Of a DNA stretch of 64,000 nucleotides, positions 1-22,177 are shown in pieces. The notes below the pieces were generated by a model. It had not been told where the DNA came from. It saw nothing but the letters and a program-made list of their open reading frames with translations, and did not search any database. Both the position numbers and the translations under genes were made by a program. Numbering within the stretch: position 1 is the stretch's first letter; each line of letters opens with the position of its first letter. Origin of the DNA: Rebecca billardiae RCC1528 (Eukaryota; Protista; Haptophyta); contig OZ251246.1 of NCBI GenBank assembly GCA_965240325.2, forward strand, positions 62,001-126,000. Reading direction: 5' to 3'.

Positions 1-3000
1 CTCGCCCAGCGCGCCGCGCAGCAGCTCGAGCACGCCGCGCCCGCCGCGGTGCGCCCGGTATGCCTCAATGCACACGGAAGCCATCGCGAGCGCGCGGCCG
101 CGCGCCGACAGCGGCAGCGGCGCGGCGAGCGCGCCGAGCGTCGACGCCAGCGCGGCGTGGTCGTCGGCGAGCGCGCCGGGCGCGTCGGGGTCGAGCAGCG
201 CGGCGCACCACCGCGCGTACAGCTCGAAGCACAGCGCGGGAGGCAGCGGGTGCAGCGCCAGCGGGCCGTACGATCCGACGTCCGCCGCGGCCGCGCCGAG
301 CGCGCCGCCGGCCGCGCCGCCGGCCGCGGCCGCGCCGCCGCCGCCGCCGCCGCCGCCGCCGCCGCCGCCGCCGCTCAGCGCGCCGCAGCGCGCGATGCCG
401 TCGTCGTCGGCGCCGCCGTCGGACGCGGCGACGGCGACGCGGAGCAGCAGCTGCTCCAGCCGCGACGCCACCGCGTCCTCGTCCACCGCCACGCCCGAGT
501 CAGCCGCGCGCCCGCCGCCGCCCGCCGCGCCGCCGCCCGCCGCGCCGCCGCCGCCGCCGCCGCCGCACGCGGCGGCGCAGCGGTCGGCGGCGACCTCGGT
601 CAGAAGCAGTGACAGGTCGACGGCCGCGTGCGCCGCGCCCGCGCCCGCCACGCGCACGCCGCGCAGCTCGAGCCAGCCGCCCAGCGCGCACGCGTACGTG
701 CGCACGCGCCGGGCCGAAAACGCCTGCAGCTGGCGCGCGCGCGCCGCGCCGGCCGACGCGCCGCCGCCGCCGCCGCCGCCGCCGTCCGCTCGCGCCGAGA
801 TTGCAATCTCGGGCGCGCCCAGTAGCGCGAGCTGGTAGCCGAGGGAGAGGAGGCACTCGGGGTGCGCCGCGCGCAGGCGCTGCGCCGCCGACGCGCCGCC
901 GAGCACCGCCGAGCTGCCGCCGAGCCCGCCGCCGACGCTCGGCGCGCCGCCGCGCGCGAGCGCAGGCGGCGCGCCGCCGCCGCCGCCGCCGCCGCCGCCG
1001 CCGCCGGGCTCGGCGGCGGCGAGGCCGAGCTGCACGCTGAGCCGCGCGTGCGTGCGCCGCGTCACCTCGAGCGCCAGCCGCACGCGCTCCTGCGCCGCGT
1101 GCGCGCGCTGCCGCGCCGACTCGCCGCCGCCATCACCGCCGCCGCCGCCGCCGCCGCCGCCGCCGCCGCCGCCCGGCGGCGGCGGCGGCGGCGGCGGCTG
1201 CTGCGCGCCGCCGCGCGCGTGCACGGCGGCGCAGAGCAGAAGCAGTTCGTACGCGGCGGTGCGCGCGGCCTCGTCGTCGTCGAACCCGCGCGGCGAGAGC
1301 GCCGCGCGCGGCGCCTCCCACCGCGCGCCGCCGCCGCCGCCGCCGGCCGCGCCGCCGGCGCGCGCGCGCGCCGCGCGCCGCGCCGCCGAGATTGCAATCT
1401 CGGCGGCGTCCGCGTCGTCAGGCTCGTCCAGTAGCTCGGCGCCGCTGTCGGCGGCGGCGGCGCGCGGCGGCGTGCCGGCCGTCGGCGGCGTGCCCGCGCC
1501 CTCAGCGCGACCGCCGCCGTCCGCGCGCGCAGGCCGCGCGCCGCGCGGCGGCGAGCCGCGCGCCGCGCCCGCCGCGCCGGCCGCCGCGCCGCCGCGCGCC
1601 GCCGCCGCCGCCGAGATTGCAATCTCGCCGCCGCCCGCCGCGTCGTCGTCGTCGTCGTCGGTCGAGAGCTGCGAGAACGAGACGGTGGGCGCGACGTCGG
1701 GCGCCGCCGGCGCGCCGCGCGCCGCCGCCGCCGCCGCGCGCGCCGCGAGCGAGATCGCGCGCTCCACGTCCACGCGCTCGAGATCGCGATCTGGCACGAC
1801 CCGCCGCCCCGAGATTGCGCCGAGATCGAGGCCGCTCGGCAGGCTGTCGGCGGGCCGGCCGAGGAGGGCGGCGAGCTCGGCGCGCGGCAGCGCGCTCAGC
1901 GTGTGCCGCAGCAGCTCGGCGCGCTCGCGCCGCGCCGCACCGTCCGCACCGTCGCCGCCGTCCGCGCGCGCCGCGCCGCTGCCCCCGCCGCCACCCCCGC
2001 CGCCGCCGCCGCCGCCGCCGCCGCCGCCGCCGCCGCCGCCGCCGCCGCCGCCGCCGCCGAGCGCGGCCGCCGCCGCCGGCCCCGGCCCCGGCCACAGCCT
2101 CGCCGTGGCGGCGAGCTCGAGCACGGCGGCGCAGCCGGCGTGCCTGCGGTCGGGCGCGGCGGCGCACGCCTCGAGCGCGTCCTGCGTCGCCGCCGCCTGC
2201 GCCAGCTGCCGCGCGTACACCGCGACGAGCGGCGCGGCCGCGCGCGGCAGCTCGGTCGTGCGCGCGCGCCACTGGCCGCCGAGCAGCGCGCACATTAATT
2301 CGGTCTGAATAAAGAATAAATCGAGCGCGTCGCGGATCGCGTCGAGGCGCGCGGAGCACACGGCCTCGGACGCGCCGGTGAGCCCGTCGCCCGACGCCGC
2401 GCTCCGCCCCGGCCCGAGCCCGCCCGCGCCCGCCGCCGCCAGCGCGAGCGAGCACAGCCGCTGCACGGCCGGCAGCTCGGCGGCGGCGGCGCCGAGATTG
2501 CAATCTCGCCACGAGCGCTCGCGCCGCGCGGCGCGCACGCGCGGCGCGTGGGGCCACGCGGCGAGCGCGCCGACGAACGCGCCGTACTGCCGCGCGAACG
2601 TCGCCTCGTCCGCGCCGCGCGCGCCCGGCCGCGCCGCCGCGCCCGCGCCCGCACCCGCGCCGCCGCCGCCGCCGCCGCCGCCGCCGAGCGCTCCAAAGCT
2701 GAGCGCGTCGTCGGCGGCGGCGGCGGCCGCGAGCGGCGCGCGGCCGCGGTGGAGGAGGAGGTGGACGAGCTGGGCGGCCTTGAGCGCGGCGTGCGCGCCG
2801 GAGGCGGGCGCGGCGCGCACCGCCGCGCGCACCGCCTCCACCACCTCGCCCTCCGCCACGCCGCCCTGCGCGCCGCCGTCGCCCGCCGAGCCAGCATGGC
2901 CGCCGCCGCCGCCGCCGCCGCCGAGATTGCGATCTCGGCTCAGCTCGACGATGGTCTGCACGTGCTTCTCCTTGAGCGCGAAGGCGGTGGGCGCGGTGCA

Positions 3001-19505: not shown

Positions 19506-22177
19506 TCAGCGCGCGCTGAAGACGACGTCCGCCGGGATGCGCGTGCTCGCGCCGCGGCTGAGGAAGTCGTGCAGCAGCCGGTCGAGCTCGTCCACCTCCG
19601 CTGGCGCGGGCGGGGTCCAAGCGGGTAGGCGGGGTTCAAAGCGGGTAGGAGTAGGGGCAGGGGGCGGGGTGAGTGGCACGGCGCGCAGGGCAGCCGTGAG
19701 CGGCGCGCCAGCACAGCCGGGTAGGGGTAGGGGTGATCGGGGTGATGAGGGAAGAGGCGCGCCGCCGCACCTTGCGACATGAGTGCGGCTGACGCGCCGC
19801 CGCCGCCGCCCGGCGCAGGCGGCGGCTGCCGCAGCGCATCCCCCGGCTGCAGGGGTAGGGTTGGGGGTAGGGTTGGGGGTAGGGTTGGGGGTCGCGTCGT
19901 TACGGGGGCAGGGCTGGCGAGTGCGCGAGCAGGCGGCGTGGCGCGCGGCACAGCGGCCGGCGGCGCGTGTGCGCGGCCCATGCGGCCACGCGCCGCGCGC
20001 GCGCGCGCTCACCTGCACCTGCGCGGCCTCTGCGCCGCGCGCGCCGCCGCCCGCCGCCGCGAGCGCCGACTCCGCTGAGCCGAAGCCGGCGAGCCCCGCC
20101 ACGTCCAGCGCGTCGAGCGAGTCGCGGCCGTCGGCGCCACCGCCGCCGCCGCCGCCGTGCCGTCCGTACAGGCGCGCGCGCACAGCCACGTCTGCGTCCG
20201 GCCGCGCGCCCGCGCCGTCGGGCGCGCGGCGCCCATGCTGCGCGGCCGGCGGCGGCGCCGGCTCTGCCGCCTCGCCGCCGCCGCCGCCGTGCGCCAGCCG
20301 CCGCAGGTGGTGCTGGGCGGAGGGCTGCTGCTGCTGCTGCTGCGAGCCGCCGCCGCCGCCGCCGCCGCCGCCGCCGCCGCCGCCGCCGCCGCCGCCGCCG
20401 CCGCCGCCGCCGCCGCCGCCGCCGCCGCCGCCGCCGCCGCCGCCGCCGCCGCCGCCGCCGCCGCCGCCGCCGCCGCCGCCGCCGCCGCCGCCGCCGCCGC
20501 CGCCGCCGCCGCCGCCGCCGCCGCCGCCGCCGCCGATCAGCCCGACGGTCGGCCCGGCGTGCGCCGCTCCCCAGCCGCCGCCGCCCCCCGCCCCAGCGCC
20601 CGCGTCGCCGCCCGCCGCGCCGTGCGGCCCCGGGCCTTGCGGCGCGAGCAGCGATGCTGCGGTGGGCAGCAGGGTCGCCATGCGCTCGCGCTGCGACTCG
20701 AGCTGGGCCATCAGCCGCTGCTGCTGCCACGCGAACTCGCGCCGCATCGCCGCCATCTCCTCGGCGAGCCGCATGCGCTCGAGCTCGGCGACGAGCGAGC
20801 CGCCGCCGCCGCCGCCAAAGCCGCCGCCGCCGCCAAAGCCGCCGCCGCCCGCCGCGCGCCCGTCGTACGCGTAGCCGCCGCCGCCGCCGCCGCCGCCAAA
20901 GCCGCCGCCAAAGCCGCCGGCGGCGGCGGCGGCTGCGCGCTCGCCCCGGCCCGCGCCCGCCGCGGTCGCCCAGTCGGCGGCGCCGTCGTGCGCGTGCGTC
21001 GGCGCGCGCGGCGGCGGCGCGCGCCCCGCGCGCGCCCCGCGCGCCGCCGCGCTCGGCGCCCCGCCGCCGCCGCCGCCCCCCGCCGAGATTGCAATCTCCG
21101 CCTCCTCCGCCATCGGCTGCCCGACGCGGTGCAGCTCGGCGACGACGCGCCCGCGGCCGTCGCGCATGGGCGCGCCGCCGCCCTGCCGGCCGAAGCCGGA
21201 CCACCAGTCGGCGTCGCCAAAGCCGGCGGCGCCCTCGGCCTGCTCCGCCTCCGCGCCGCGCCGCCGCCGCCGCGCCGCCGCCGGCGCCTCGTGCAGCGCC
21301 GCCTGCGCCTGCGCCGCCGCGCTCGGCATCGGCGGCGCCGAGCCGCCGTCGGGGTCGGCCGCGCGGTGCAGCTCGCCGATCACGGCGCCGCTGCGGTCGC
21401 GGAGCGGGGCGCCGCCGCCCGCGCGGCCGAAAGGGTCGTAGTTCGCCGCGTCCTCCATCTCCTGCCGGGCGGCGCGGCGCGGCGCGGCGCGGCGCGGGGC
21501 GGCGCGGGCGGCGCGGGCGGCGCGGGCGGCGGCGCGGGGCGCGCTGAGCGGCGCGCGGCTCGCGCGCGCGCCGCCCGCCGCTGCGGCGCGGCGCGCGCGC
21601 AGCACGCCCGGTCCACACGCACACCCGCCCGCCCGCCCGCGCGCACCTTGAGCTCGCGCCGCCGCAACTCCTCCGCCTCGGCCGCCTTGCGGCTCTGCTT
21701 GGCGGCAATCTGCGCCTCGAGGTCTGAGACAAACGCGCGGCGCTTGGCCTCGGCGGCGGAGCGCTCGCGGGAGGAGGGCGCGTTGTGGAGGCCGGCGAGG
21801 CCGCGCATGAAGCCGCCACCCTCGCCGCCGCCGCCGCCGCCGCCGCGCGACTGCGGCGGGAAGTGCGGCGGCGGCGGCGGCGCGGGCGGCGGCGGCGCGG
21901 CGGCGCGCGGCGGCGCGACGGGCGGAGCGGCGCGTGCGAACGGCGGCGAGGCGGCGGCCGCGCCGGCGGCGGTCGGCGCGCCCGCGCCGGGCCGGCCGAA
22001 CGGGTTGGCGCTCACCATCGCCGCGATCTCGCGCTGGTCGCGCTCGCGCGAGCGCGCGCGCTCCGCGTCGCGCGCCGCCGCCTTGGCCGCGATCTGCGCC
22101 TGCAGCTCGTCGGCGTACGAGCGCTGGCGCGCGGACTTGGCGGCGGCATCGTCGGACGGCGCGTGCGCCAGGAGCAT
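19506..22177 (-). CDS. CSPP1/CCDC66-like centrosome/cilium coiled-coil protein, spliced (intron 21646-21462 and probably two more near the 3' end)
   Basis: QRSYADELQAQIAAK and three PFGRxGGGAP(L/M)RD-type motifs (NPFGRPGAGAP, YDPFGRAGGGAPLRDRSG, GFGRQGGGAPMRDGRG) resemble the CSPP1 WGKGGGGAPLRD motif. Confidence 0.6.
20347..20535. repeat. Pure (CCG)63 trinucleotide tract, poly-Gly on the coding strand
   Basis: 189 bp uninterrupted. Confidence 0.9.

Follow-up and report, generated by a model that had tools for sequence, protein, structure and literature searches.

The 64 kb of contig OZ251246.1 analysed here (hereafter the window, by which we mean the whole of that stretch) contain nine exact copies of the word GAGATTGCAATCTC, a perfect 14-bp palindrome with A or T at eight positions. 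Dinucleotide-preserving shuffles gave an expected count of 0.00, so that the word is grossly over-represented relative to composition, and all nine copies lie within the coding sequence of three genes. That this word is specified at the level of the DNA, and not at the level of the peptide it encodes, is well supported. We propose that it is a ready-made block which has been copied into permissive gene segments and then eroded, an explanation to which we give an even chance of being correct.

The word and its copies

An initial annotation, made from the sequence alone, had listed the nine exact copies with their coordinates, arms that extend the palindrome to 28 bp at 1381-1408 and to 22 bp at 17718-17739, and variants at 2923, 62513 and 1780. 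We recovered all of these, the three variants carrying one, two and three mismatches, respectively. A search allowing up to two mismatches adds just 2923 (A9 to G) and 62513 (T6 to C and A9 to G), and the mismatch classes therefore fall from nine exact copies to a single copy in each of the classes with one, two and three mismatches. There are zero truncated cores, as the central 8-mer ATTGCAAT occurs nine times and every time inside the full word. GC content per 2 kb varies from 53 to 89% along the window, and is 77-86% in the motif-bearing stretches. The copies and their variants are listed by position.

797..810: exact copy read as EIAIS from the minus strand, in the ANTH-like gene.
1381..1408: exact copy (core 1388-1401) read as EIAIS, within a 28-bp perfect palindrome.
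1613..1626: exact copy read as EIAIS, breaking up a GCC/GGC triplet run.
1751..1793: pair of decayed copies with a spacing of about 30 bp, that at 1751 read as ERAIS and that at 1780 as DRDL, followed by a solo half-site at 1811.
2494..2507: exact copy read in the other frame as RDCNL, in the ANTH-like N-terminal region.
2923..2936: one-mismatch copy (A9 to G) read as RDRNL.
16617..16630: exact copy read as RDCNL, in the PDI-like orphan gene.
16717..16730: exact copy read as EIAIS, the sole copy without any CGCC arm.
17718..17763: 24-bp tandem pair, with an exact core at 17722-17735 (22-bp palindrome) and the GC-shifted GAGCTCGCGAGCTC at 17746.
18493..18506: exact copy read as EIAIS, directly ahead of a hydrophobic strand.
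21085..21098: exact copy read as EIAIS, in a linker following a repeated FGRxGGGAP motif, in the gene that the initial annotation labelled CSPP1-like.
62513..62526: old copy GAGATCGCGATCTC read as EIAIS in frame 0, in a PHD-finger gene.

Coding context

Two methods, position-specific GC content and a codon model for which two Pfam-supported genes (the methionyl-tRNA synthetase MetRS and the transporter NIPA) served as training set, agreed in placing all copies in coding frames of the minus strand. For 21 of the 22 flanks examined, the frame continues unchanged across the copy. The word is thus present in frame within protein-coding genes, to which it adds a peptide, as is the case for the Rickettsia palindromic elements (RPEs). 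Exact copies are translated as EIAIS in seven cases and as RDCNL in two, while the variant at 2923 gives RDRNL, and GAGATTGCAATCTC has no stop codon in any frame; both the frame assignments and the absence of stops had been read correctly from the sequence in the initial annotation. The occurrence of seven of the nine copies in one frame has a P of 0.008 for a given frame.

The codons used by the word had been described as rare in these genes, and our codon counts agree with that description: ATT accounts for none of the 48 isoleucine codons of MetRS and NIPA, GCA accounts for 2.5% of the alanine codons in the host genes, and the GC content at third codon positions (GC3) of these genes is 0.91-0.975. 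Given the EIAIS peptide, the joint probability of the codons is about 0.005 per copy, and all seven EIAIS copies use identical codons. In the host proteins, about half of all isoleucines come from the word. The central proposal of the initial annotation was that the motif is dictated by the DNA and not by the protein, and we consider it well supported because identical disfavoured codons recur in the seven EIAIS copies, because two copies are read in another frame and because the arms are conserved beyond the peptide. Its remark that transposons and compact conserved enzymes are free of the word also held, as the transposon region (about 4-15 kb) and the MetRS, NIPA and FKBP genes contain no copy.

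The unit beyond the 14-bp core

Conservation declines outward from the core (100, 89, 78, 83, 72, then about 50%), with no preference further out. The four bases that flank the core, read inward over the 18 arms, are C, G, C and C in 13, 15, 14 and 16 arms, respectively, and 10 of the 18 arms are exactly CGCC, compared with a background of 0.07 in the same genes (P ~9e-8). The consensus unit is therefore a frayed 22-bp palindrome, CGCC-GAGATTGCAATCTC-GGCG. The full pair of arms is found in two copies and a single arm in six, and the ninth copy lacks both. Because the flanks beyond about 4 nt are unrelated between copies, the copies are not segmental duplicates; they have in common only the 14 nt and the arms of about 4 nt, unlike an element of about 100-150 bp with a consensus that continues past the stem. 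A tandem-repeat (TRF) row that would make 16617 and 16717 part of a 96-bp tandem duplication is contradicted by the flank identities.

No target-site duplication was found, as the flanks are inverted (CGCC...GGCG) and direct repeats of 1, 2 or 4 bp do not occur consistently, and this bears on the transposon footprint that the initial annotation had put forward as one candidate mechanism. A cut-and-paste element with ends GAGATTG (or AGATTG plus a CG target duplication) would have left two retained stubs joined into a palindrome, and the core is indeed a 7-nt stub followed by its own reverse complement, while CG-AGATTGCAATCT-CG fits a palindromic 2-bp duplication in 16 of 18 arms. Beyond CG, however, the flanks are inverted and not direct, and a 12-nt footprint with one extra CG makes 14 nt, for which a frame shift is expected whereas the frame is equal on both sides of the copies. 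Furthermore, footprints are normally heterogeneous in length, which does not agree with the lack of truncated cores, and the window contains no element with such termini and solo half-sites only at 1811 and 53367. Inverted flanks, missing duplication and frame arithmetic together make this candidate very improbable.

Three other classes of sequence were considered for the word. It does not have the GT/GC...AG boundaries of a tiny intron, it does not fit a tRNA-derived sequence, and Rfam found no RNA family in the window. ARAGORN calls a tRNA-Pyl (anticodon CTA) at 13675-13752 on the plus strand, in a transposon-rich stretch of lower GC content, which is probably a tRNA-like sequence or a false call.

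Clustering within the window

The three host genes, all of them Ala/Gly-rich and largely of low complexity, are the following.

1..3078, minus strand: host gene 1, with an ANTH/ENTH-like N-terminus followed by low-complexity sequence, running past the window start; four exact, one near-exact and about three decayed copies.
15675..19034, minus strand: host gene 2, an orphan with a weak thioredoxin motif; four exact copies and one decayed copy.
19509..21440, minus strand: host gene 3, the exon region bearing the 21085 copy, with uncertain boundaries.

These genes make up 8.5 kb of the 64 kb and hold all nine exact copies. The remaining 55 kb are free of exact copies, including a stretch of coding DNA at 28-38 kb that is just as GC-rich. 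A plausible empty target word, CGCCGGCG, occurs at 56 sites, 47 of which are outside the host genes. Because empty target words are common outside the hosts, target availability fails to explain the clustering, which must involve local spread or gene-specific tolerance.

This distribution is relevant to the comparison with the cyanobacterial palindrome HIP1 (GCGATCGC), which is 8 bp long, matches genome composition, occurs quasi-periodically throughout the genome and is tied to two methyltransferases (PMC4390886; PMC13756078). Even, genome-wide spacing of the HIP1 kind, over coding and non-coding DNA alike, is not seen within this one window, where the copies are confined to three genes.

Erosion of the word and excess of exact copies

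We scanned the window for the word with its six G/C positions fixed and its eight A/T positions either kept or changed to G/C, with the following results.

Eight A/T positions kept: 9 observed, 0 expected.
Seven kept: 1 observed, about 0 expected.
Six kept: 1 observed, 0.005 expected.
Five kept: 0 observed, 0.1 expected.
Four kept: 4 observed, 0.58 expected.

Variants retaining seven, six or four of the eight A/T positions are thus over-represented, and in those which retain all six G/C positions every change is from AT to GC. About five copies can be regarded as eroded (2923, 62513, 1751, 1780 and 17746). Four of the five are altered at both position 6 and position 9, where TpG/CpA steps become CpG, and the fifth at position 9 alone. 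At 62513 the two AT-to-GC substitutions fall in third codon positions and are synonymous, giving the preferred codons ATC and GCG, so that EIAIS is retained. The copy at 17746 (GAGCTCGCGAGCTC) has both CGCC/GGCG arms and is located 10 nt from the exact copy at 17722, with which TRF reports it as a 24-bp tandem pair.

Exact copies make up 9 of 15 among copies with up to four changes, as against 14% expected (P ~5e-5) under a rough neutral model of eight equally mutable sites with steady birth and decay. This excess points to a recent burst of copying or to active upkeep.

Active upkeep would be found if selection held the word exact as a functional cis-element within particular gene bodies, either as a site which a dimeric protein binds or modifies or as a hairpin signal in DNA or mRNA. 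A perfect dyad, a number of exact copies which exceeds that of one-off variants, a limitation to few genes and the presence of the same word in a second haptophyte contig (described below) would all be in keeping with such a role. The arms, moreover, prolong the palindrome beyond chance (mean extension past the core 2.0, compared with 0.56 at random junctions, P 0.006), and the predicted hairpins are stable in most contexts (-22 to -33 kcal/mol), although two of the nine are no better than shuffled sequence. However, real binding sites tolerate degeneracy, of which there is almost none here, the copies at 2923, 62513, 1751, 1780 and 17746 have eroded without replacement, and the hosts, which are orphan or low-complexity genes, are not related to one another. 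Selection also cannot make a word with eight A/T positions in GC-only DNA without a copying step, and would therefore explain upkeep and not origin. We regard a cis-element as rather unlikely.

The same variants are relevant to an origin in place, in which sequence-biased mismatch repair or methylation-linked conversion would turn near-matches into the word step by step, as has been proposed for cyanobacterial HIPs (PMC4390886). A constant frame would then come free, as nothing is inserted, and GC-shifted relatives such as that at 17746 could be substrates instead of decay products. Nevertheless, the intermediates are nearly empty (1, 1 and 0 copies with 7, 6 and 5 of the eight A/T positions kept), plentiful empty near-target words remain unconverted, and up to eight GC-to-AT changes would be required against a GC3 of at least 0.95. 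The copies are also clustered in three genes and do not show genome-like spacing, and in the sole orthologue comparison (see below) the word-bearing loop is 16 residues longer and not of equal length. An origin of this kind seems to us distinctly improbable.

Occurrence outside the window

Scanning the metagenome contigs of JGI for the word with GC flanks returned 22 loci, all of which are bacterial single hits except two (L009 and L014). The bacterial hits correspond either to conserved coding sequence of the REIAIS type or to the tips of long terminator-like hairpins. In the latter group (L001, L002, L003, L004/L012, L007 and L018) the same 14-mer stands at the tip of a far longer perfect, GC-stemmed, terminator-like palindrome on unrelated bacterial contigs. 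These hairpin-tip hits are best explained as chance occurrences among very many hairpins and not as a family. Similarly, a scan of viral contigs gave four single, chance-like hits, and an 18-mer scan of 185,579 prokaryotic species, with one genome each, gave 20 single chance-like hits and no iterated family.

The two remaining loci are environmental contigs from two different samples. Their gene is eukaryotic, with a GC3 of 0.89, and encodes a large multi-pass membrane protein, the best relative of which is found in Haptolina brevifila (52% identity). Here the word is flanked by GGC runs and is read as EIAIS, and ATT and GCA are minority codons in this gene as well. The loop of L009 that bears the word is a variable one and exceeds that of the Haptolina orthologue by 16 residues. 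The L009 reading frame (3-5291, minus strand) belongs to an uncharacterised haptophyte family of multi-pass membrane proteins of very large size, which show repeated 'LLL..L.L.PWR' helices and no Pfam domain, with relatives in Haptolina and on several environmental contigs.

This single copy is a hint that more than one species carries the word. It also argues strongly against an assembly artefact, given that the JGI contigs were assembled independently and come from two samples of a haptophyte gene. As the coding phase is, in addition, maintained across copies and partly eroded copies exist, we find an assembly, adapter or base-calling artefact barely credible.

Haptophyte nuclei may even hold an active system with sequence specificity, consisting for instance of a template and a nuclease or recombinase, that writes one exact palindrome into gene bodies, keeps it exact and is shared across haptophyte lineages. 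Sharing across lineages is suggested because the word also occurs in a contig nearest to a prymnesiophyte, whereas the window is nearest to Pavlovales. We hold such a system to be unlikely; if it did exist, it would be a true eukaryotic counterpart of the prokaryotic iterated-palindrome systems.

Origin of the copies

A point-mutational origin of the word is disfavoured because the classes with one to three mismatches are nearly empty, and because the creation of eight A/T positions from GC-only DNA would oppose the compositional bias of the genome (GC3 0.95-0.975). We infer that the copies arise from template copying, and that the block needs no host function. In the mechanism that we propose, a tiny repeat with an invariant 14-nt palindromic core and the 22-bp consensus given above would have spread as a ready-made block through repeated and in good part recent copying within a haptophyte nuclear genome. 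It would have entered GC-only tracts that code for Ala and Gly in a small number of permissive genes, and copies would persist only where the reading frame was kept and the added peptide (EIAIS or RDCNL) fell in a tolerant segment. Later they would erode under the strong AT-to-GC pressure of the genome, the two TpG/CpA positions going first.

Since the invariant part is 14 nt long and yet the frame is kept, the event that creates a copy would either add a frame-neutral unit or overwrite existing codons. Entry could accordingly take place by true insertion of such a unit, with 12, 15 or 18 nt all compatible, or by short-patch conversion. All ten copies, that of L009 among them, contain a 15-nt candidate unit, GAGATTGCAATCTCG, in one orientation (chance P ~0.02), and a 12-nt candidate unit, AGATTGCAATCT, placed into a G|C step is also compatible. 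The sole orthologue comparison, that of L009 with Haptolina, shows net extra residues, although in a variable loop.

Several points weigh against the copied-block explanation. Insertion, the length of the block and the direction of change (decay or build-up) are reconstructed from the present copies, and no empty orthologous site was found among the sequences compared. An invariant part of 14 nt is not a multiple of three, and simple block insertion therefore needs an extra assumption about the ends. The excess of exact copies would suit selection or active maintenance equally well as a recent burst, and the sample is small, consisting of nine copies in a single window.

Host genes, organism and other features of the window

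The names given to the host genes by the initial annotation fared differently. Host gene 1 has no Pfam hit, but its 393 N-terminal residues match ANTH/ENTH clusters of the ESM Atlas with a language-model score of 0.96, which favours the ANTH-like label. The PDI-like label of host gene 2 is weak, with only a weak thioredoxin hit in Pfam (E 0.002) and zero relatives among a library of 1.84 billion representatives, and the CSPP1-like label of host gene 3 found no support in Pfam or the PDB. A comparison of the ANTH-like protein with relatives gave 0 hits, the query being dominated by low-complexity words, and PDB sequence searches with the host proteins returned low-complexity noise only. The single-sequence AlphaFold model of the ANTH-like domain has a pLDDT of 41 and is unusable for placing the word in a loop or a helix.

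Judging from sequence similarity, the organism is a haptophyte and the window is nearest to Pavlovales. The best relatives of the NIPA transporter are 57-68% identical, and it is closest to haptophyte sequences, among them a Logan contig (68% identity) and Pavlovales sp. CCMP2436 (60%). The databases contain no near-identical relative, and an exact-product look-up of MetRS matched nothing. No copy of the word was found in about 30 kb of usable DNA drawn from two Pavlovales sp. CCMP2436 loci, a Logan contig of 6 kb and four contigs (3.5-12 kb) from another haptophyte group, which is too little DNA to claim absence there.

Other repeats are present in the host genes. The open frame that holds the 21085 copy also contains a perfect (GCC)63 run at 20346-20535 (100% matches), translated as a run of over 60 glycines, and a perfect (GCGTCG)13 run at 17878-17956 forms an (Asp-Ala) repeat in the PDI-like gene. 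A 12-bp microsatellite (GGGGTAGGGTTA/G), read as PNPTPNPT, is found at 18121-18170 and 19852-19892 in the PDI-like and CSPP1-like open frames; these two stretches may be introns, and both gene models are probably multi-exon.

Elsewhere in the window, a different 14-mer, GCGGCGGCGGGCTC, occurs about 25 times at 33400-38600 and 43246-43780 within a giant minus-strand open frame (30224-44665) with a TMEM132-like domain, where it reflects a long internal coding repeat. The plus-strand open frame at 53297-55585 has a nucleoside diphosphate kinase domain (residues 50-198) fused to a complete methionyl-tRNA synthetase. A weak Methyltransf_32 hit is located at 4335-5411, and no link between it and the word was made.

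Relation to known systems and significance

In our literature search the word itself was in no paper found, and there was no report of an iterated palindrome in a eukaryotic nucleus. The initial annotation had likened it to HIP1 and to the Rickettsia coding palindromes, which is apt as an analogy and fails as a statement of membership, given the neighbour spectrum of the word, its clustering in three genes and a unit about ten times shorter than an RPE. RPEs are bacterial palindromic repeats of about 100-150 bp which are inserted in frame in protein-coding genes and add a tolerated peptide, and in this GAGATTGCAATCTC is alike. They have diverged between copies and encode a sizeable peptide, in contrast to the present unit, which adds about five codons and the copies of which are identical.

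HIP1 and GAGATTGCAATCTC are both short exact palindromes that occur far above chance in coding sequence, in more than one frame, with specification at the DNA level and no agreed origin. Unlike HIP1, GAGATTGCAATCTC is 14-22 bp long, is compositionally foreign (eight A/T positions in DNA of about 85% GC) and is found in a eukaryotic nucleus. It is also clustered in few genes and is almost without one-off neighbours, a spectrum that does not fit point mutation or biased repair, whereas the neighbour spectrum of HIP1 fits a mutational or repair origin (PMC4390886; PMC13756078).

The mobile GC clusters of yeast mitochondria resemble a mirror image of the word, being small hairpin palindromes of a composition opposite to that of the host, with many identical copies, turnover in copy number and an unidentified transposition enzyme (PMC4478555). 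These clusters, for example GC42, are organellar, 30-50 bp long and mostly intergenic, with an AG target-site duplication (PMC4478555), while GAGATTGCAATCTC is nuclear, lies in coding sequence in this window, measures 14-22 bp and has no duplication. Finally, the REP/BIME palindromes are prokaryotic, extragenic elements of 20-40 bp which are mobilised by RAYT transposases from a recognisable gene (PMC3733652). They share with our unit the dispersed occurrence of palindromes and a conserved short tag beside the stem; no recognisable RAYT-type transposase gene was seen with GAGATTGCAATCTC.

Palindromes that invade coding sequence are known from bacteria (HIP1, RPE and REP) and from organelles (yeast GC clusters), where their origin is debated, and here the same kind of sequence is met in a eukaryotic nucleus. 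As its composition is opposite to that of its surroundings, new and eroding copies are easily distinguished, which makes the word a tractable system for asking how such sequences form, whether by insertion, short-patch conversion or repair, and whether they are functional. Its presence also has practical effects on the genes that carry it, which acquire a foreign five-residue peptide in their proteins, strong predicted hairpins in their mRNA and about half of their isoleucine codons.

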